Shown one piece after another: positions 21,166-30,918 of a DNA stretch of 64,000 nucleotides. The translations under genes were made by a program, and so were the position numbers. Below the pieces are notes generated by a model that was not told the origin of the DNA, made no database searches, and saw only the letters and a list, made by a program, of their open reading frames with translations. How positions within the stretch are numbered: position 1 is the stretch's first letter; the number at the start of each line of letters is the position of its first letter. The DNA lies in the sequence record NC_091964.1, one strand, 5' to 3'.

Positions 21166-22246
21166 TATGGCAGCAGTGAAAGCAAGCGCATCTTCCGCGA
21201 TGTCGTCTGCTAAAGCACTGGGTCAATCTGCCACAGCGAAAGCTAACTCCGGTGTATCGATTCTGTCTACCTCTGTTAAAGACGGTATTCAGGCTGTCGA
21301 CGGATTCGGTAAAAAGGTATCGGATGTTCTGACTGAAACCAAGTCTACGCTCTCGGCTAAGATTGCAGAGGCAAAGTCCTGGTTGACTGAAACTAGCATA
21401 GGGGATTTAGGTTCCCTCAAAGACATGTTAGCGAAAGCAGCAGAACTGAAGAAAGATGCCCAGGCCCTACAGAACCAGATCACCACCGCAATTACTGACG
21501 GTATCGGTACTGTACGTGGCCTAACGGATTCTGTACTCGGTCCAGCAGAAGAAGCGTTGTGGAAGCTCCAGCAAATTCCTTTCGATAAGATCACCGATGG
21601 GAAGTATTGGCTAAATCTCGCGATAGGTTCATCTGTGAGTGAGGTCAATTCGCTGGGTAACCTGACTAAACGTCTTCTGGGCGACGTAGACGGTATCATC
21701 GACGGCTATAAGGATAAGTATGCTGAGCTGTCACTTGCAATCGGTATATCTGATCATGCAGTGACTCTCGGTGATTCTTCTGTAGTAGGTGCAGTAATTG
21801 ATAAGTACGGTTCTGAAGCAGCTTTACGCGAATCGATTATCAACCGTTTCCCTGATGCAATTATGCAGGGTAACACTGCAATGCTTAAGACGATCATCGA
21901 GAAGTTCGGTCCGGCGTATGTGTTGGTGAAGTATCCAACTGCCGTGCAACTTATCCTGACCGGCTACCGCATGCCCGTAGGATCAACCGTGAACGATTTC
22001 CCCGCTCTCGGTGAGACATTGTTAGAAGTCCTTACCATGTTGGATCCTCAATGGGCGAATCTTAAGACAGTACCGAACGCACAGCATAACCTGAAGGTGT
22101 TCACAAACTCCTCAGTGTCCGCTCAGCGCGTTTTAGCAGGTGTTCCCGGCTTAGGGTATGTCTTGAAGATTGCGTTGAACTACCCGAACTCTGACGTCCT
22201 CTCTGTTGCTCGAAACCATTATCCCATGGCAGGGTTTAATAGTTGA
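21152..22246 (+). CDS. Virion structural protein (start revised)
   Basis: SD gaggagga before ATG 21152; Ala/Ser/Lys-rich amphipathic N-terminal half. Confidence 0.55.
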   Translation: MEMPDMAAVKASASSAMSSAKALGQSATAKANSGVSILSTSVKDGIQAVDGFGKKVSDVLTETKSTLSAKIAEAKSWLTETSIGDLGSLKDMLAKAAELKKDAQALQNQITTAITDGIGTVRGLTDSVLGPAEEALWKLQQIPFDKITDGKYWLNLAIGSSVSEVNSLGNLTKRLLGDVDGIIDGYKDKYAELSLAIGISDHAVTLGDSSVVGAVIDKYGSEAALRESIINRFPDAIMQGNTAMLKTIIEKFGPAYVLVKYPTAVQLILTGYRMPVGSTVNDFPALGETLLEVLTMLDPQWANLKTVPNAQHNLKVFTNSSVSAQRVLAGVPGLGYVLKIALNYPNSDVLSVARNHYPMAGFNS

Positions 22247-22252
22247 CAGCAC

Positions 22253-22298
22253 AAACCCCTCTTCTCCTTTCGGAGAAGAGGGTGTTATTTTTTTTTTT
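22253..22298. terminator. Terminator between convergent genes
   Basis: CCCTCTTCTCC stem with TTCG-containing loop, GGAGAAGAGGG, long T-tract. Confidence 0.85.
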
Positions 22299-22303
22299 GC
22301 TTC

Positions 22304-23080
22304 TTACCAGTTTTCCAGAGAAGACTGGCGACGGTCGAGGAGTTTACCGTAGCGATGTTCGAAAGCGTCGATCGATGCTTCTACTGATACGCGGTAGGCT
22401 GATTCCATACCGATGCCTTTCAGTGCCTGTTCATCTTTCAGCGTCTGCATAAGAGTAGACGTTGCCGGAATACGAACCAGCTCCAGAACATCAGCAGACT
22501 CGCAACTCGGGGAGTTGAACTTGTTAGCCGGACTTAACCCTGGTTCGTTTACCACGTCCCACGTGATGATGTTGTCGAAGAACTTACGACGTACACCACC
22601 GACAATACGGTCATTGGTTAAGGAACGTACAGAGAACGCAAGGTTCTCGTGAGGGTTGTTCAGCGCACGTTCAACGACGCCTGCATGAGGACCTGACGGA
22701 GCAACTTCGCCAAGGATAGCGATAATCTTTTTACCGTCCGGACCAACGTAGGCACGATCAATCCAAACACGACGGATATGGATTGCAACGTTACGCTCAT
22801 CGATAGTGTGGATACGACGAACGAAGTCATTGTAGTCACGACACTCACGCTCTACCGGATGTCCTAACTCACCGCGCAGATAAGAGTCTTTCATACGGCG
22901 GTTAAAAGTCTGGGACTTTTCGATAATGCGAATTGCTGATTCTAAATCGTAAACGGACCCGGTGGAGTTTGGATATTCGAGCGCACCGAGAACAACCTGA
23001 CAATAGTTGTTATCAAGGCGCTTAACATTTCCTTGCCCAGAGTAGCCGCGCTGTACGGTAATCTCAAAGTTATTTTTCAT
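22304..23080 (-). CDS. Prohead protease (phiKZ gp175-like, T4 gp21 clan)
   Basis: LRGELGHP (catalytic His), AFSVRS (catalytic Ser), TWDVVNEPG; C-terminal S/G-x-E candidate autocleavage sites. Confidence 0.88.
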   Translation of the reverse strand: MKNNFEITVQRGYSGQGNVKRLDNNYCQVVLGALEYPNSTGSVYDLESAIRIIEKSQTFNRRMKDSYLRGELGHPVERECRDYNDFVRRIHTIDERNVAIHIRRVWIDRAYVGPDGKKIIAILGEVAPSGPHAGVVERALNNPHENLAFSVRSLTNDRIVGGVRRKFFDNIITWDVVNEPGLSPANKFNSPSCESADVLELVRIPATSTLMQTLKDEQALKGIGMESAYRVSVEASIDAFEHRYGKLLDRRQSSLENW

Positions 23081-23087
23081 GGTATCC

Positions 23088-23804
23088 TCATTCCCATGCT
23101 AAGAAGGCAGGCGGTGTATAAGACAACAGGTCTGCTTTTACTTTCTTCGCCGTTAGATATTGACCAAGCGGGATGGTTTTACTAGACCGCACGCGAGTAG
23201 TTACACCTTTACGGTAATAGGCGTCCAAATCGGAAACCACAACGGAGTGACAGCCCTTACCTAGAAGGACGTTCTCAGTAAAAGGTACAAGACCTTTAAC
23301 ATCTTCCGTTATCTGGATGTATATCTCTACTTCAGCAAAGACATCACCTCTGGCCGTACGATAGAACATCTGCCCAATCACCTTACCGGGATACTTCTGC
23401 CCTTTCTGCTTGTAGTCAATCAACCACCGCTCATCACACCATTTGGCTATAGGTGCCAGCTTTTCCGTGATCTTTATATTCAGGTCAGCAGGAATAGCAT
23501 AGATGTAATAACCACCACGCCATTCACCGCCACCTGCACACCCAGCTTCACCTTCCAAAAAATCCCGCACAGTAACAGCATAGCCGCGTATACAGTCGAG
23601 AACAGTGGGGGCCGTACAGACCCGCGCCACTGTGTTATCTTCCCCTGGCATTGCACGCTGAACTACACGCGGAACGAACTCCGCAATCTCATCCGTCGGT
23701 GAGATGTGGTATAGCATTTCAGGCTCATGCACGATAATGGTGTTCTCGAGAACCTTCGGAGAATAACGCATAAGCGTGCGCATGGCTAATACATCATCAT
23801 CCAT
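23088..23804 (-). CDS. Putative ADP-ribosyltransferase-fold protein
   Basis: LYHIS...FVPR...ED...RVCTAPT..DCI.GY...YYIY...DERWL; His / strand-2 / Glu spacing of an ART fold. Confidence 0.45.
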   Translation of the reverse strand: MDDDVLAMRTLMRYSPKVLENTIIVHEPEMLYHISPTDEIAEFVPRVVQRAMPGEDNTVARVCTAPTVLDCIRGYAVTVRDFLEGEAGCAGGGEWRGGYYIYAIPADLNIKITEKLAPIAKWCDERWLIDYKQKGQKYPGKVIGQMFYRTARGDVFAEVEIYIQITEDVKGLVPFTENVLLGKGCHSVVVSDLDAYYRKGVTTRVRSSKTIPLGQYLTAKKVKADLLSYTPPAFLAWE

Positions 23805-23805
23805 A

Positions 23806-24531
23806 TCACACCCTCAGCAGTTTCTCTACAGGTTGCTCTTCTTCAGTCGGGTTAACGATCGCAGAATCAAGACCTTCAGCAATGTTGGACCCACCAATTT
23901 TCGACACGGTATCTGTTGCACCGTATTCAACGTTACGCATTGGGATGTAAGTGAAGTCCAGACCAGCAACATCACTCGGCTTCTCAACAGAATGACGAAT
24001 AGGGATATTACGATCCTTATTGTCACGAGCCTGTTGTGCAATTACCATCTCGAACACAGACGGTGTTGCGTACAGACTTGTACCCGTGTATTCACGAGCA
24101 TTACTGAAGAAGCTACCCATTTGCTCGTAAGTGTAATACCACACGGTACGAGCACGAGCGATAACATCCTCAAACAGCGGATAAAGCGTTAACTGGTCTA
24201 CCAATAAATCAGTGGACTTAGCTACGCGTGCGCCTTTCGGATAGTGCAACTCGTAATACATCTTCCCGTCGATTTCGACGTTGTGAATGTCATCCGGCAT
24301 GGTGCGAATCATGGAAGGGACTTTCCACGTGCAGTAGTTGCCGTCCGGAGTAATCATGGCAAAGTAGCCAATAAAGGAAATCTCTTTCCCTAACGAGATC
24401 AGCTGCTTTGCACGGAAAGACTCGGGTACGTGAATAACGCACCCGGTCTTGGTGACTAATGCTCCGTCGGGTAATTCTGCCAAGGTTGACAACACGGCTT
24501 CCACATTACGTTTAAGCTTTGTGACATCCAT
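23806..24531 (-). CDS. Virion RNA polymerase beta' subunit, C-terminal part (phiKZ gp176-like)
   Basis: EMVIAQQAR...PMRNVEYGATDTVSKIGGS..AEGLDSAIVNP.E...VEKLLR matches the beta' C-terminal region. Confidence 0.75.
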   Translation of the reverse strand: MDVTKLKRNVEAVLSTLAELPDGALVTKTGCVIHVPESFRAKQLISLGKEISFIGYFAMITPDGNYCTWKVPSMIRTMPDDIHNVEIDGKMYYELHYPKGARVAKSTDLLVDQLTLYPLFEDVIARARTVWYYTYEQMGSFFSNAREYTGTSLYATPSVFEMVIAQQARDNKDRNIPIRHSVEKPSDVAGLDFTYIPMRNVEYGATDTVSKIGGSNIAEGLDSAIVNPTEEEQPVEKLLRV

Positions 24532-24543
24532 GGCCTAACCCCC

Positions 24544-26031
24544 TTAGACTTCGTCGTTACTGATGTGGAAGTTCGCAACCATCCAACGTGCCAGGTACAG
24601 GACCTCAGCGTAGTAGGCGGCGTAACGCGGTTCGATTTCTTCTTCGAGAACGATCTCTTCCATCGTTTCGAGAATCATCAGCGCATCAGTGAACGGGAAG
24701 ACCAGCTGACAGATCACGCGGGTTAACAGATCGTGAATACGGATCTCTTCGCTCGAATCCCACTTAGCGAAATAAACCTTCAGCACGTCAGTGACTTTAG
24801 CGATGTTTGCAATCGCGGCAGTACGATCGAAGTCCGCAGGGAACTTATCTTCCGGCATCTCTTCCAGAGTCGCATTCAGAACAATGCGCAGAGCATCATT
24901 AATGCGGTCGATCATCGTGAGGCTGGTCTGAGTCTGACGATGTTTGTCCATCGCCTGATACACGGCCAGACACTCTTTCTGAATCGGCAGAAGATCCGCG
25001 AGCTTAAAGAGTTTCTTGGTTGGGTGGATTGCACCGCCAATTACTTGCTCAGCTACCAGGCCTTTTTCCAGCGCCTGACGGAAGGTCGTCTTCATGACCA
25101 GAATACGGCCCATACGGTCATCGAAGAAGATGCCGCGCGCAGTCGGCTTACGCAGATACAGAACGCCAGACTCAACGTCTTTGATGTACTGGTCTGCCAG
25201 ACGACGGATAGAACCACCGAGGTTGTTCATGGTCTGTTTCAGGTAAGTACGGTACTCATCCAGAGACAAGCCAGTGCCGTCGATCGGGTTATCCAGATAA
25301 CCGTCAACGATGAAGTAAGCCAGCGCCAGCAGTTCGATTTCATCCAGGCTATAAGTGCCCAGAGTATAACCGTCCGGAGTACGTACAATCAGGCGACGTA
25401 CCAGGTCAGTTACGGCAGTTTCGTTCTGAGGGCGAATATCGCGGAAGATAGCGTTGTAGATATCCACAACTGCTTGCTGCCCCAGGTTACCGATGATGTC
25501 ACCAATAGCCCCATCGATCTCAGGAATGTTCGTCGCGATTTCCTGCATGATGGTCGGTGCATCTTTCTCAGTACCGCCCTTAGACACTTTGTAGTAATTC
25601 GCAGGTGGAACGTTTTTGAATACGTTACCCGCTACTTCAGAGGTCAGGAAAGGTGAAATCTCAAACTCAGAGATGTGATACTCGGAAGGAGTTGAAGACT
25701 TCATGCGGTCCAGCAGACGGTTGGTCGCTGTAGAGATGAACGGTCGCACCGTGTTACGCACGTAGTCGAACTGGTTAGTAATACCGACCAGCAGGACTTC
25801 TACGGCGTTGTTCGTCGCGGACTCGTGTTGAGACAGACCTTCAGATTCAATAACGATATCGGCAGTGCGCTCAATTTCGCCAGCGGCATCTTCCATGGAG
25901 ATACCTTTGCGGTTGACCAACGGCATGGAATAGCGAATAGCATCAGTAAAGATGTTGTGGTTCGCTTCGAGACTTACGTTGGTCTGCTTGACGATTGCCT
26001 GAGCAAGGCGGATGGAGTGTTTACTGAGCAT
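24544..26031 (-). CDS. Virion head protein (phiKZ gp177-like)
   Basis: 495 aa, helical, located between vRNAP subunits; candidate S-x-E sites (SLE, SME) near the N-terminus. Confidence 0.55.
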   Translation of the reverse strand: MLSKHSIRLAQAIVKQTNVSLEANHNIFTDAIRYSMPLVNRKGISMEDAAGEIERTADIVIESEGLSQHESATNNAVEVLLVGITNQFDYVRNTVRPFISTATNRLLDRMKSSTPSEYHISEFEISPFLTSEVAGNVFKNVPPANYYKVSKGGTEKDAPTIMQEIATNIPEIDGAIGDIIGNLGQQAVVDIYNAIFRDIRPQNETAVTDLVRRLIVRTPDGYTLGTYSLDEIELLALAYFIVDGYLDNPIDGTGLSLDEYRTYLKQTMNNLGGSIRRLADQYIKDVESGVLYLRKPTARGIFFDDRMGRILVMKTTFRQALEKGLVAEQVIGGAIHPTKKLFKLADLLPIQKECLAVYQAMDKHRQTQTSLTMIDRINDALRIVLNATLEEMPEDKFPADFDRTAAIANIAKVTDVLKVYFAKWDSSEEIRIHDLLTRVICQLVFPFTDALMILETMEEIVLEEEIEPRYAAYYAEVLYLARWMVANFHISNDEV

Positions 26032-26254
26032 CGATTACTCCTTCAACTGCTTTCTTTTCGTTAATGGCACGCACTAACGCCGCAGCCACGTCTTCAGATA
26101 CACGCTGACCGAGGTCGACGTTCATACCCTCGACAAAGTCGCCAGGGTTGCACGGAGGAATCTGAATTGACTCAGACTTCTGTCGAAGAATAACACGCTT
26201 GCTAATCTCGACCAGGTTTGCCATAGTGGCTACCTGTTTAGTTTGTTTTTCCAT
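26021..26254 (-). CDS. Small hypothetical protein (start revised to ATG 26254)
   Basis: SD aaggtg; stop overlaps the next gene's start region. Confidence 0.55.
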   Translation of the reverse strand: MEKQTKQVATMANLVEISKRVILRQKSESIQIPPCNPGDFVEGMNVDLGQRVSEDVAAALVRAINEKKAVEGVIDAQ

Positions 26255-26283
26255 TTTTAAGGTCACCTTAATAGTTGAAACTA

Positions 26284-26301
26284 GGGGGAGGGCCCTCCCC
26301 C
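26284..26301 (-). terminator. Hairpin after the vRNAP betaN gene
   Basis: GGGGGAG-GGCC-CTCCCCC; weak T-tract. Confidence 0.45.
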
Positions 26302-26307
26302 GTCAAA

Positions 26308-29300
26308 CTACGAATCGTACGCCTGTACCATTGAGAACCCGATGAATTCCTGGCAGATGATAGACATTCCCGCCATGATCGAGCTATGTACAATACGCGC
26401 CTCTTCCGCACGATAAGAGAACTCCAGATCGATCTTACGAACGCCACTACCCGGCCAAAGTTCTGACGCTGTATAGGTCGGTCCACGCTGCTCGCCTGCG
26501 GATACAGATTTCAGCTGGTTAGACAATACCAACTTGTCGCCACCTGACATAATACGTTCTTCGGTAATGAATATCCGAATTGCCATCATATCAATGTCGA
26601 CAGAAATCCCATCCACTCGGGCAGGGGTCGTTATTTCCCCTGTGGTTGCATCGCCATTATTAAGTTCTCTTGCCAACTGACCACGAACGCGATCGTACTT
26701 GTCAGCTACTTTACGGACGGACGGAGACATGTCGTCTTTGTCGCCGAAGTAGATAACCTGAATCTCTTCGACCTTACCTGAGTTATTAGCTCGAGGAGTA
26801 GGACGGGATAACAGGTTTAGTGCATCGAGGTTATCGGAACCAACCCCTGCTGACACTTTGTCTTCGATTACCGCAAGAACAGTATCGATATCAACTTCTT
26901 CACCGACAGACACGAGGTTGTGAATGGCGTTGTCGAAGCGGACAAAGAGTGTACGAATATGGGTTACGTTTGCACGCATCTTGTAAGCCAGTTCCGGTGA
27001 CATCAAGGAACTATCTTCCCATGTTTCGTTCTTCTCGATCAGCACGGTATAAGGGTAGCACCCTTGTTTCAATGCTGACGAGGTTGGGTCACGGCGGTCT
27101 GGCGTGTAGAAGCCTTCGTTGTGGCAGATAACCGCACCCTTCTTAAAGCTGTCGCCAGCTTTCATCCGAGGAACGATGTTGTGCGGTACAACGTGACCGG
27201 TCACTACGCCGAAGCGACGACCAATCTGGAAGGCTTTCTGTTTACCGTTCTTGTACTGGACCGTGATAACACGATCAGTAACGGAAACAACCTTACCGTC
27301 ATCTTTAGCAGTTACCGAGAATAGATCATCGGTACGATGTGCAACTACCTGGTCATAGCCTGTACGTACGGCCATTTCCTGAGATTCAGCAATTGCAACA
27401 ACGTGGTCCTGCTGGATGTTGATAAAGTTTACACGCTTACCATCATCGTACTCTGCAAAGGGAGACATGAGCATCGACGTAGATACCAACTGAGTAGGCG
27501 ATACCTTCTCAGGGTCAACGGTCTGCACTGTACCACGCAGGGAAGTGATGTTTGGATCAGGCGGCATGAACATGTTGATACCAACGTCACCGGAGTCAAC
27601 ACCTGCCTCTGAGCGTACGCCTAAATCGGTTTTGTGGAAGGCACGAGTACGTCGAGTCATCGCCACCTTAGAACGACCACCTGTTCCCGAATACGTCATG
27701 TTCTCTTTTTCTTTCAGGTTATGGATTACGTTAGAATCCTCAACCAAGCTAACAGACGGATCTTTCTGGATCGAAGTAAGAACTTCAAACGGGTTCAGGT
27801 CCACCGACGTTTTAACAGACACTGGCTTATTACGATAGTTACGCACGGAGTCAACGATGGCTTTATAGACAGCACCGGACATACGCTCGTAACCTTTCAC
27901 TAACATCAGTGAAGTATCGAGGTCAGACTTGTAGTTGTCATCCACCAACATATCCGCAGCTCGAATGAACAAGTCGCGCATGTTAGTAGGTTCTTTCATC
28001 ATCGTCAAGTTTTCGATTGCGATAGGATCTAAGAACATATCTTCGATCAGACCGATCTCGTTCAAGTGACGATTGCCTAACCCGTTAGCCATAAACATCG
28101 GGGTGTAATACGCTTTGTCATTCAGCTCTGCAACCTGGATGGTACGAAGCTGTTTCTTCCACTGGTTTAGTGAAGCGAAGATTAATGAAGCGTAAGACTG
28201 GTCTTTCGGTAATACCCAGACCTCATCAGCAAACACGATTTCGAACTCGTTAGGAGCAGTATCCTTCTTCGCACCTTTAATACGGCGACGCGGATAGACA
28301 CCATTAGGAACGGTATTGTCATGCTCGAAACTAATATAACCGTATTGCTCCGAATAATACTCGGAATAGCTCTCGGTAGAAACCGGAGAACCATAGAGGC
28401 GGTTAGCGAGTTTGTTCAACCCGAACATATAGGCAAGGACGATGCCCAACGGAATCTCATGGCCCATCACACGCAGGACAACAATCTCAGCAGGGGCTGT
28501 ATTATCATCCAGGTCGATCAGGCTAGGGATTGTACCGATGTCCTGACCTTTGACCTTCAGTCTGCCATTACGGTCCATATAGACAATCTCATTGCCTTTA
28601 CGTCCAACCGGCCAGTCCTGATTCTTCGTTTTCGGTAGCGCTACGCCAGGGAAGTTCTTCTCCATTCCTTCATAATCGAAATGGAAGTGAATATCCCCAA
28701 TCTGCATTTCCAGATAACTCTGGGCGATGGCAGAGTAGATGCGTGGCACTGGTTGCTGTTCACCATAAGAGTTACCGTAAACAACACCCTTTACTCGTGA
28801 ACCATCTAAGATTTCAGAGGTCAGAGCAGAGAGGATCCAGTTGTCGAAACTTGCCACTTTCTTCTGCGAACGCTCAACGAACAACTTACCGTAGTAAGAA
28901 GTCAACGCGACAGTGTGAGTATTGATCTTACGGATCGGCATATCCGCACGGAGCTTACGCATGTAATAGCGTACACCGTTGATCATGTACTTACCGTTCT
29001 CATCGATTTTCGGTAACTGGAAGGAGAGAGTAGACTCTTTCCCATGAACCGGTGTTACCTTAACGCGGTAGTCAATAGTTTTCGACAATGCGTCGCTGAA
29101 CTCTTCCCGCTCGAAGCCAGTCACTGCGATACCTGCTTTTTGAATCGCCAGTACCATATTTGCAGTATCCTTCGGCATCACCTTCTCAACGTATTCAGTA
29201 TCGAAGTTAATGAGTGAGGACTGAAGCATCCCTTTGTCGACAACGTTAGGGATATCCGGGATCTGAGCAGGTTTAAAGTTCCAGATGTCCTGGATAGGCG

Positions 29301-30918
29301 GTTTAGCCGCTTCTTCCAGTGTAACACCATCGACCTTTATTTCCTTATACTTGCGACTCAAGCGGATATGGCGCTCGTGCTCTTGGCGAGAGATTACGCC
29401 TTTACGCAGAAGTTCCGCTGACTTAACAGCCACACCTGCTTCCAACGGGTTAGACGTATCGACGTTGATGACCGCGGGCAGGTCTTCTTTCACCGGTTTA
29501 TTCACAACACGAGCAGAGCGCTCAGGTGGAAGTTCCGGTACGTCTTCATCGGTGACTTCAGTAATGTCCTGGTTGTCCAGTTCATTTAGATCCATCACTT
29601 TATCCGTTAATGCAAGCTGTCGTCCACCTGCAAATTGAGGTGCAACCATACCCAAAGCACCACGGCGATCGGTCTGGCGCTCTTCCCCCTGCTCAGGAGC
29701 TTCTGTATCGTCCTCTACGACGCTCGCATCACTATCCCCTGCCGTTACCATACCGATAGTTTCAGGCTTGTCAGCTTCGCTCTCAGGCACGGTTTCAAGG
29801 ATAACATCACGCTGATCTAACTGGCGAAATGCCATCATGTTTGACAGGTAGTTGTGGAAACGCTGAGTCATGGTTTGAATACCAGACTTCTCACGCCACT
29901 CGTTCAACTTGGCCATAGACAGGACGTTGTACCGACCACCCACTGTAAAGACGAAGAATACTTTTTCGTAGTGGGCAGGATCGATAGCGTTCAGCTTAGA
30001 GTCTTCCCGCTTCTCGCCTAACCAACGCCACAGATCGACTAACTGCAACGAGTCGTCGTCAGGGAACCAACCAATCGTTACACGGGTCCAGGCTTCAAAG
30101 CCAAGATCACAATCGCAACCTTCCAGATCTATTTCAGCGTCATCGGACCAACCGAGCGTAGCTTCATCGAAAGATTCAAAACCTTCGTTCAGTTCCTTAA
30201 CAGCAGCATCACCCAGAATACGATCGAGGTTGTCTGCTAACGGGGCGAAAAGCTCGCGGAAAGAAGTGATACGTGTTTCATCAGCACGCAACTTACCTTC
30301 AAAGAACTCGGGGCGCTGAGTTCCATCCACGCCATGTGCATGCGCCGCCTGTTCGTATTCTTCCACCGCGTGGAACTTGTTACGAGGGGGCAACACTTCC
30401 GGCAGGTTGAAGAAGATCAGGTGGTTACGAGTAGACTCCTTCGCAACAGCCGCTACCGTATCGCAGAGTGTACCATAAAGGTTATTCCAGCGTTGGATAC
30501 GCGCCCAGGCTGTTGGGAGGTAACGCCAGCGAAGAGGGATCATCGCATAGTTGAACACGATAGGATAGCGCTTATCCATCAGCGCTAATGGTAGCTTCGT
30601 TACCCGTTTTACCTTACGGTTCTTCTGGTAATAGAAGCGAATCATGTTCTTGATCTGGAAGGCAGGGATAAAGCGTGGGTTACCATCTTTCTGCGTCATG
30701 TCCTCAACGTGGTGAACATAATGCTGACGATTAAACCCGCGGGTAGGGAAGTAATCCTCTTCCGGGCCCAGGTCTTGTGCTGCGATGGGTAAGTAGTGCA
30801 ACGCTACGTTCTTCGGCAGATTCCAGTTATCGGATTCGAATGCTTTCGGATTAGGTAGGTTACCTTCTGTTCGAGCTGAATAGCGGTATAACCACGTTTC
30901 AAGTTCGAGTTCGGTCAT
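26308..30918 (-). CDS. Virion RNA polymerase beta subunit, N-terminal/main part (phiKZ gp178-like)
   Basis: PFAEYDDGKRVNFINIQQDH, EKNETWEDS, GGDKLVLSNQLKS double-psi barrel motifs. Confidence 0.9.
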   Translation of the reverse strand: MTELELETWLYRYSARTEGNLPNPKAFESDNWNLPKNVALHYLPIAAQDLGPEEDYFPTRGFNRQHYVHHVEDMTQKDGNPRFIPAFQIKNMIRFYYQKNRKVKRVTKLPLALMDKRYPIVFNYAMIPLRWRYLPTAWARIQRWNNLYGTLCDTVAAVAKESTRNHLIFFNLPEVLPPRNKFHAVEEYEQAAHAHGVDGTQRPEFFEGKLRADETRITSFRELFAPLADNLDRILGDAAVKELNEGFESFDEATLGWSDDAEIDLEGCDCDLGFEAWTRVTIGWFPDDDSLQLVDLWRWLGEKREDSKLNAIDPAHYEKVFFVFTVGGRYNVLSMAKLNEWREKSGIQTMTQRFHNYLSNMMAFRQLDQRDVILETVPESEADKPETIGMVTAGDSDASVVEDDTEAPEQGEERQTDRRGALGMVAPQFAGGRQLALTDKVMDLNELDNQDITEVTDEDVPELPPERSARVVNKPVKEDLPAVINVDTSNPLEAGVAVKSAELLRKGVISRQEHERHIRLSRKYKEIKVDGVTLEEAAKPPIQDIWNFKPAQIPDIPNVVDKGMLQSSLINFDTEYVEKVMPKDTANMVLAIQKAGIAVTGFEREEFSDALSKTIDYRVKVTPVHGKESTLSFQLPKIDENGKYMINGVRYYMRKLRADMPIRKINTHTVALTSYYGKLFVERSQKKVASFDNWILSALTSEILDGSRVKGVVYGNSYGEQQPVPRIYSAIAQSYLEMQIGDIHFHFDYEGMEKNFPGVALPKTKNQDWPVGRKGNEIVYMDRNGRLKVKGQDIGTIPSLIDLDDNTAPAEIVVLRVMGHEIPLGIVLAYMFGLNKLANRLYGSPVSTESYSEYYSEQYGYISFEHDNTVPNGVYPRRRIKGAKKDTAPNEFEIVFADEVWVLPKDQSYASLIFASLNQWKKQLRTIQVAELNDKAYYTPMFMANGLGNRHLNEIGLIEDMFLDPIAIENLTMMKEPTNMRDLFIRAADMLVDDNYKSDLDTSLMLVKGYERMSGAVYKAIVDSVRNYRNKPVSVKTSVDLNPFEVLTSIQKDPSVSLVEDSNVIHNLKEKENMTYSGTGGRSKVAMTRRTRAFHKTDLGVRSEAGVDSGDVGINMFMPPDPNITSLRGTVQTVDPEKVSPTQLVSTSMLMSPFAEYDDGKRVNFINIQQDHVVAIAESQEMAVRTGYDQVVAHRTDDLFSVTAKDDGKVVSVTDRVITVQYKNGKQKAFQIGRRFGVVTGHVVPHNIVPRMKAGDSFKKGAVICHNEGFYTPDRRDPTSSALKQGCYPYTVLIEKNETWEDSSLMSPELAYKMRANVTHIRTLFVRFDNAIHNLVSVGEEVDIDTVLAVIEDKVSAGVGSDNLDALNLLSRPTPRANNSGKVEEIQVIYFGDKDDMSPSVRKVADKYDRVRGQLARELNNGDATTGEITTPARVDGISVDIDMMAIRIFITEERIMSGGDKLVLSNQLKSVSAGEQRGPTYTASELWPGSGVRKIDLEFSYRAEEARIVHSSIMAGMSIICQEFIGFSMVQAYDS

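Follow-up and report, generated by a model that had tools for sequence, protein, structure and literature searches.

The 64,000-nucleotide stretch of sequence record NC_091964.1 analyzed here (the window) carries on its minus strand, at positions 23088-23804, an open reading frame (ORF) of 238 amino acids, here called gene X. We propose, with moderate confidence, that its product belongs to a new and very divergent family of putative enzymes with an ADP-ribosyltransferase (ART) fold, about a dozen copies of which would be built into chimallivirus heads and delivered with the DNA. A relative of X in Salmonella phage SPN3US is a published low-copy head protein, and the predicted fold is that of an ART; X therefore probably travels in the capsid to the next host as an enzyme. 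The reading frame is open throughout and begins with an ATG preceded by GAGGGTG, and its product is identical (100%) to the annotated hypothetical protein QFP93133.1 of Serratia phage PCH45. The surrounding region of about 8 kb is likewise 100% identical to the genome of this nucleus-forming jumbo phage (MN334766), in which gene X occurs as a single copy; record positions equal window positions plus 62,000.

A Predicted Divergent ADP-Ribosyltransferase Fold

A structure model of X based on 142 sequences reached a predicted local distance difference test (pLDDT) score of 93.6 and a predicted template modeling (pTM) score of 0.89. In this model, two helices and a short strand at the N-terminus are followed by a strand (residues 29-35) carrying H33, and then by a long loop with P45, R50, E55, and D56. 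Strand 61-65, with R61 and C63, leads into two helices that end in G74-Y75; strands 99-106 and 109-112 and a short helix then precede strand 126-128, which follows directly upon E125, and strand 141-152 is succeeded by three more strands and a helix. The model thereby displays the six-stranded split beta-sheet core, in the order b1-b2-helix-b3-b4-b5-b6, that forms the cleft for nicotinamide adenine dinucleotide (NAD).

In a structure search independent of Foldseek that covered 48,161 chains, ART-superfamily proteins occupied 17 of the 18 top rows, all of them aligned over model residues ~21-170. The ART matches among the top rows included AvrPphF, Scabin, Tpt1, TreX, NatT, pierisin, PltA, pertussis S1, MTX, diphtheria toxin, ParT, and RES toxins. 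A second-look structure search returned ART-superfamily proteins in each of rows 1-31, and a shallower model built from 20 sequences (pLDDT 81) gave the same picture of structural matches. In addition, all 30 nearest named clusters found by a protein language model for residues 21-170 were Arr-type rifampin ARTs (score 0.94, 156-158 shared features), a kind of neighborhood that the tool itself rates as a lead and not as proof. The C-terminal part (~141-238) had no informative fold match. Considering the model and these searches, it is likely that residues ~21-170 adopt a very divergent ART-superfamily fold.

Several results weigh against this assignment. No ART-family Pfam match appeared even at E up to 10, for X or for 142 family members, with PF01885 and PF12120 among the unmatched families; searches of PDB sequence profiles with two family alignments gave noise or nothing; and hhalign comparisons of the X family with Escherichia coli KptA and with an 86-sequence KptA alignment remained below a probability of 1%, although a greedy KptA alignment nonetheless sets LLHIS on FLYHGT. 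The family has neither the Tyr that H-Y-E ARTs carry on strand 2 nor the Q/E-x-E motif that marks the R-S-E clade. Moreover, neither X nor scans of 20 and of 142 family members had a relevant match in Pfam, NCBIfam, or PADLOC. The preliminary description of this DNA, made from the letters alone, had called the gene ART-like; this stands as a structural resemblance in fold searches, but not as a link to any curated ART sequence family (Pfam, NCBIfam, PDB profiles, or KptA in hhalign). Since profile links and the two clade motifs are missing, X is placed in the ART superfamily at the level of fold only.

Family, Conservation, and Proposed Active Site

Gene X matches PHROG 5043 (E = 2.3e-38), to which no function is assigned there, and a profile search against 1.84 billion representatives retrieved 550 clusters at E up to 0.001, most of them about 240 amino acids long. 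To judge from these sequences, the X family is large, unnamed, and phage-only; a scan of 185,579 genomes of bacteria and archaea with patterns of the close family found no relatives. Among 151 clusters, conservation is nearly complete at H33 (99%), P45 (100%), E55 (98%), R61 (99%), G98 (97%), E125 (100%), W127 (100%), G184, K220, L227, and W237, followed by G74 (91%), Y75 (88%), D56 (87%), and Y102 (87%), and position 63 is Cys, Ser, or Thr in most members. The near-invariant positions are retained in Goslar_00224, RAY gp169, NOXIFER_128, and FBKp24_324, and the family motifs hYHxS, E-D, P-R-[IV]-[CST]-x-A-P, and E-x-W are kept in Goslar, RAY, Noxifer, FBKp24, and SPN3US.

All motifs reported in the preliminary description were recovered in the translation, namely LYHIS (31-35), FVPR (43-46), ED (55-56), RVCTAPT (61-67), YYIY (99-102), and DERWL (124-128). 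Since H33, P45, E55, R61, E125, and W127 are kept in 98-100% of the 151 clusters, these motifs go beyond chance. The elements of the proposed active site and its surroundings are as follows.

23700..23714, minus strand: strand 1, LYHIS (31-35), with H33 as the proposed NAD-site His (99% conserved, Arg in one member)
23637..23642, minus strand: E55-D56, on the loop joining strands 1 and 2; gone, along with H33, R61, and E125, from degenerate duplicates
23607..23624, minus strand: strand 2, RVCTAP (61-66), with R61 at 99% and position 63 resembling the S-T-S position of R-S-E ARTs
23580..23585, minus strand: G74-Y75, closing the helix that follows strand 2, with Y75 as a putative nicotinamide-stacking Tyr
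23499..23516, minus strand: strand 3, GGYYIY (97-102), with G98 at 97% and Y102 at 87%
23421..23435, minus strand: DERWL (124-128) at the start of strand 5, with E125 and W127 invariant and E125 as the proposed catalytic Glu
23091..23384, minus strand: C-terminal part (~141-238), four further strands and a helix, with G184, K220, L227, and W237 conserved; SPN3US gp246 has a shorter version and phiKZ gp283 none

In the structural alignments, H33 falls on residue 9 of pertussis toxin, residue 7 of cholera toxin/LT, residue 21 of diphtheria toxin, and residue 18-19 of Arr, a correspondence read from alignment ranges and not from a residue-level superposition. These residues are the strand-1 Arg or His, so that, in the model, H33 would hold the strand-1 His/Arg position of ARTs. 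An exchange between His and Arg on strand 1 is what separates the two big ART clades, and one member of the X family that is fused to a NUDIX domain (P0162) has Arg in place of His at position 33. In the same way, E125 would be the catalytic Glu at the start of strand 5, and its only losses are in degenerate duplicates. On strand 2 the sequence is R-[IV]-[CST]-x-A-P, which is non-canonical and resembles the S-T-S motif of R-S-E ARTs, where a small nucleophilic or hydroxyl residue stands at the place matching position 63; G74-Y75 follow 11 residues later.

Four clusters contain fused tandem duplicates. In two metagenomic members (P0138, 471 amino acids, and P0141, 476 amino acids), the first copy is degenerate, having lost H33, E55, R61, and E125 while keeping P45, W127, and G184, and the second copy is intact; in P0021 and P0027, both copies are intact. 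In terms of sequence, P0138 and P0141 have the pattern of an enzyme beside a pseudo-enzyme. Such a joint loss of H33, E55, R61, and E125, with structural residues retained, is typical of a catalytic or ligand site. Overall, X is more probably than otherwise an active, NAD-using enzyme (putative).

The alternative that X is a non-catalytic head or head-assembly protein with an ART-like beta-sandwich, for example a partner or regulator of the protease or a hitch-hiker, whose polar residues would serve for binding, appears unlikely. It has to account for a His, two Glu, and an Arg that are 98-100% conserved and vanish together from copies that keep their structural residues, as well as for the His/Arg exchange on strand 1. 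The domains fused to X-family proteins (NUDIX, GNAT, Pol-beta nucleotidyltransferase, and HNH) also include enzymes such as NUDIX, GNAT, and nucleotidyltransferase rather than structural modules, with the GNAT fusion found among viral predicted structures as well, and Noxifer and seven metagenomic IMG/VR loci have an X-family gene with no protease gene nearby.

Two further groups of relatives were observed. In P0065 (388 amino acids) and P0080 (376 amino acids), HNH endonuclease domains are joined to either end of X-family genes, which suggests homing-endonuclease insertion at the locus in some phages. Short, core-only relatives that share YHIS, E-D, PRICVAPS, and E-x-W are phiKZ gp283 (154 amino acids; L007:3086-3550) and a second RAY ORF (186 amino acids; L018 ~1400-1960, record 59.8-60.4 kb). 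Both stand alone in early or accessory regions, away from head genes.

Probable Incorporation into the Virion

The head location of X is proposed on account of SPN3US gp246, a member of the X family by profile comparison (hhalign probability 99.1%, E = 9.5e-19, 173 columns). Like X, gp246 keeps the H, E-D, R-I-C, and E-x-W motifs, comes from a chimallivirus-type jumbo phage, and is encoded by a gene that touches the prohead protease gene; unlike X, it has 209 amino acids, lacks the last helix and W237, is encoded downstream of the protease, and has been located to the head by proteomics. In the list of 86 proteins identified from CsCl-purified virions of SPN3US, this protein of 23.9 kDa is marked 'Head'. 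It was detected with 13 unique peptides and 22 spectra (coverage 61%), and its spectral count relative to mass (SC/M) of 0.92 compares with 0.93 for the 12-copy portal and 0.81 for the protease gp245 (PMC5694885, Suppl. Table 1). It was retained in the mutant particles 244(am84), 218(am101), and 47(am1) with 52, 66, and 67 spectra, respectively (PMC5694885, Suppl. Table 3). Particles of 244(am84) and 218(am101) are without the whole virion RNA polymerase (vRNAP) (PMC5694885), and the incorporation of gp246 is therefore independent of the polymerase. The protease gp245 has a similar spectral abundance and also persists in the vRNAP-less particles (PMC5694885); gp246 and gp245 may be incorporated together.

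By analogy with gp246, X is probably packaged in PCH45 virions as well. Its ejection and action on the host are put forward more tentatively, as a putative step. The possibly packaged and ejected ART that the preliminary description had envisaged is partly supported: the published head location of the homologue gp246 is in its favor, and ejection, catalysis, and presence in the PCH45 virion are inferred.

A different possibility is that X of PCH45 is an unpackaged ART-fold enzyme of the late producing cell, with host, capsid, or nucleic-acid targets, and that head location is peculiar to the shorter gp246 subgroup. This subgroup is indeed distant (209 amino acids, no C-terminal helix, gene on the other side of the protease), and the homologues in RAY, Noxifer, and FBKp24 are annotated just as hypothetical. 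A conserved [A/G/S]-x-E cleavage site or targeting signal was not found in the X family either, the sole GGE (residues 92-94) being unconserved; the N-terminus of X is a confident part of the modeled fold, and gp246 is not among the eight protease-processed head proteins of SPN3US (PMC5694885). However, the annotations in RAY, Noxifer, and FBKp24 are not based on deep virion proteomics, and all other genes of the block around gene X encode head or ejected proteins, so that we regard an unpackaged X as quite improbable. The mass spectrometry of RAY was shallow and used a crude lysate, confirming 27 hypothetical proteins, with 44 proteins in RAY and Deimos-Minion together. For PCH45, the text of a recent preprint describes a virion proteome of 90 proteins and a transposon sequencing (Tn-seq) map, and that text does not mention gene X (bioRxiv 10.64898/2025.12.19.695335).

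No paper in the searchable literature assigns a function to gp246 or its relatives or connects SPN3US with an ART of its own. The X family is also unnamed in the main text of reviews on viral NAD/ADP-ribose systems and jumbo phages. As far as the main text of the reviews on viral NAD goes, ARTs are predicted to be often packaged in the virions of myoviruses and are commonest in jumbo phages without RNA polymerases of their own.

Proposed Function and Comparison with Known Systems

In the mechanism that we propose, X would be made late, together with the head genes, from the block reaching from the gene for the large vRNAP subunit as far as that for the prohead protease. The head would take up about a dozen copies, which would then pass, with the DNA and the vRNAP, into the next host. 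The NAD site would consist of His33 on strand 1, Arg61 and the Cys, Ser, or Thr at position 63 on strand 2, and Glu125 at the start of strand 5, with Tyr75 or Tyr102 as an aromatic lid; X would bind NAD+ and pass ADP-ribose to a protein or nucleic-acid substrate. The alternative that X is a NADase, an NAD phosphorylase, or an immune-signal sponge, hydrolyzing or sequestering NAD+ or an ADP-ribose derivative without transfer to a macromolecule, is the least probable of those considered here, as its structural matches to such proteins do not surpass those to genuine transferases (Scabin, pierisin, Tpt1, and toxins), about a dozen copies per head would be few for a sponge, and a late head module would be an odd site for one.

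The known system closest to this proposal is T4 Alt, an ART-fold phage enzyme that likewise is encoded by a late gene, occupies the head in few copies, and is injected together with the DNA. No sequence similarity between the two could be detected, and Alt is much larger than X with its 238 amino acids. Alt is an R-S-E mono-ADP-ribosyltransferase with a strand-1 Arg and E-x-E, whereas X has a strand-1 His and a single Glu. In addition, Alt is cut at both ends by the prohead protease (PMC5694885), in contrast to X, which has no conserved cleavage motif, and to gp246, which is not one of the eight processed SPN3US head proteins. A head-packaged phage ART is thus already known; to judge from the available libraries, the novelty lies in the family itself, in how its proposed active site is arranged, and in its occurrence in nucleus-forming phages.

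Compared with R-S-E ARTs such as pierisin, Scabin, and the cholera and pertussis toxins, X normally has His on strand 1, lacks Q/E-x-E and any Pfam match, and possesses extra N-terminal helices and a C-terminal beta domain. The NAD-binding lobe of Tpt1/KptA and Arr are minimal H-type ARTs. X differs from the former, besides the hhalign and PF01885 results given above, by the absence of the Tpt1 RNA-binding lobe, and from Arr, besides the missing PF12120 match, by a Glu at a position where Arr has Asp.

Nucleus-forming jumbo phages eject a protein bolus with their DNA, of which almost no component besides the vRNAP has a known activity. A bolder version of the proposal, which we regard as speculative and rather unlikely in its full form, is that, in the X family, a first enzymatic effector would have been found that travels in the capsid alongside the vRNAP of these phages. 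It would carry out an NAD+-dependent modification of a host or phage macromolecule at the very outset of infection, within or close to the early infection vesicle, by means of a His-[Cys/Ser/Thr]-Glu site outside the H-Y-E and R-S-E clades. If the family is an active NAD-using enzyme, a function would be given to a conserved head protein (gp246 and its relatives) found in about half of the jumbo phage records that have the protease, a distinct branch would be added to the ART superfamily, and there would be a direct means of learning how these phages act on the cell ahead of their own gene expression. Genetic systems are at hand in the amber mutants of SPN3US and in the transposon and Cas13 tools of PCH45.

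Gene Order across Jumbo Phages

Gene X adjoins the gene for the S80 protease in all 23 phages checked, with the order taken from tblastn coordinates of the two genes; for Goslar, RAY, and FBKp24, complete gene tables bear it out. Where both genes are listed, X lies directly upstream of the protease in 14 of 14 phages (PCH45, PhiEaH1, Moabite, ParM-25, FBKp24, KpLz-2_45, KpYy_2_45, Eowyn, pEa_SNUABM_37, Ea35-70, Bosolaphorus, Deimos-Minion, SA002, and Goslar), and in 9 of 9 of the SPN3US type it lies directly downstream. Genes of the gp246 type are present in 71 further records, and in the nine checked they come directly after the protease gene; weak X matches just downstream of the protease were also found at IMG/VR loci of SPN3US/CR5-type phages. 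Overall, about 130 of 252 protease-bearing records have a family member beside the protease, on either side. A survey of synteny therefore confirms the association of the two genes, but the side varies (upstream in the PCH45, Goslar, and RAY types, downstream in the SPN3US type), and phiKZ has no such gene at that place.

In phiKZ and SPN3US, nothing lies between the protease gene and the gene for gp176 or gp244. The phiKZ adjacency had been stated in the preliminary description, and gp175 (the protease) and gp176 are indeed neighbors. Its conclusion that gene X is an insertion holds in the sense of an extra gene relative to phiKZ, where these two genes touch, but synteny does not decide between gain and loss. 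An origin of gene X as a duplicate of its 241-residue neighbor or of phiKZ gp176 was ruled out, as there is no similarity.

The Gene X Locus in PCH45

The genes of the block and the element at its end, all within the window, are listed below.

22257..22282, no strand: perfect GC-rich hairpin of 11 pairs with T-runs on either strand, in the space where the protease gene converges with a plus-strand gene ending at 22246
22304..23080, minus strand: S80 prohead (head-maturation) protease, phiKZ gp175/SPN3US gp245 type; PCH45 gp81 in the Tn-seq preprint
23088..23804, minus strand: gene X, PHROG 5043, 238 amino acids, PCH45 gp82 by position; residues ~21-170 with a predicted divergent ART-superfamily fold, then a C-terminal beta/alpha extension
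23806..24531, minus strand: vRNAP beta'C/fifth subunit (head, ejected), 241 amino acids; homologue of phiKZ gp176 and SPN3US gp244
24544..26031, minus strand: homologue of phiKZ gp177; SPN3US gp243 (head protein, ejection-protein candidate) by matching gene order
26021..26266, minus strand: small conserved ORF of 81 amino acids (77 annotated), at the position of phiKZ gp177.1, SPN3US gp242, Goslar_00227, RAY gp166, and FBKp24 327
26308..30918, minus strand: vRNAP large subunit, 32% identical over 1085 residues to its homologue phiKZ gp178; first examined gene of the tightly packed block

The identities of both neighbors and their close spacing had been correctly described. The downstream gene, taken for the prohead protease, matches the S80 family (PF20034, E = 7e-64), and the upstream gene, taken for vRNAP beta'C, is homologous to phiKZ gp176 (E = 6e-48) and SPN3US gp244 (E = 3e-22), the latter being labeled 'Head ejection, vRNAP beta'C' (Ali et al. 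2017, PMC5694885). Gene X is separated by 1 nucleotide from the upstream gene, which ends at 23806, and by 7 nucleotides from the downstream gene, which starts at 23080, and across both gaps each gene has a ribosome-binding site of the GAGG type. Within the block, intergenic gaps amount to 1-53 nucleotides or are replaced by overlaps. No terminator-like site was detected on the minus strand within 22300-26500, and the block is closed by the strong hairpin at 22257-22282, which probably acts as a terminator in both directions. The spacing, the ribosome-binding sites, and the single closing terminator fit one late transcription unit, which would run from the vRNAP large subunit through gene X to the protease.

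The small ORF at 26021-26266 shares 11 nucleotides with the beginning of the gp177-like gene. In public runs (X1, X2, and X12-X16, for window positions 22200-26300), two 'seed metagenome' RNA libraries contain a 21-kb contig of a PCH45 relative of ~95% identity, and several other public runs include near-identical phage DNA; as assembled contigs, these indicate presence only. One IMG/VR contig (L021) is 100% identical across gene X.
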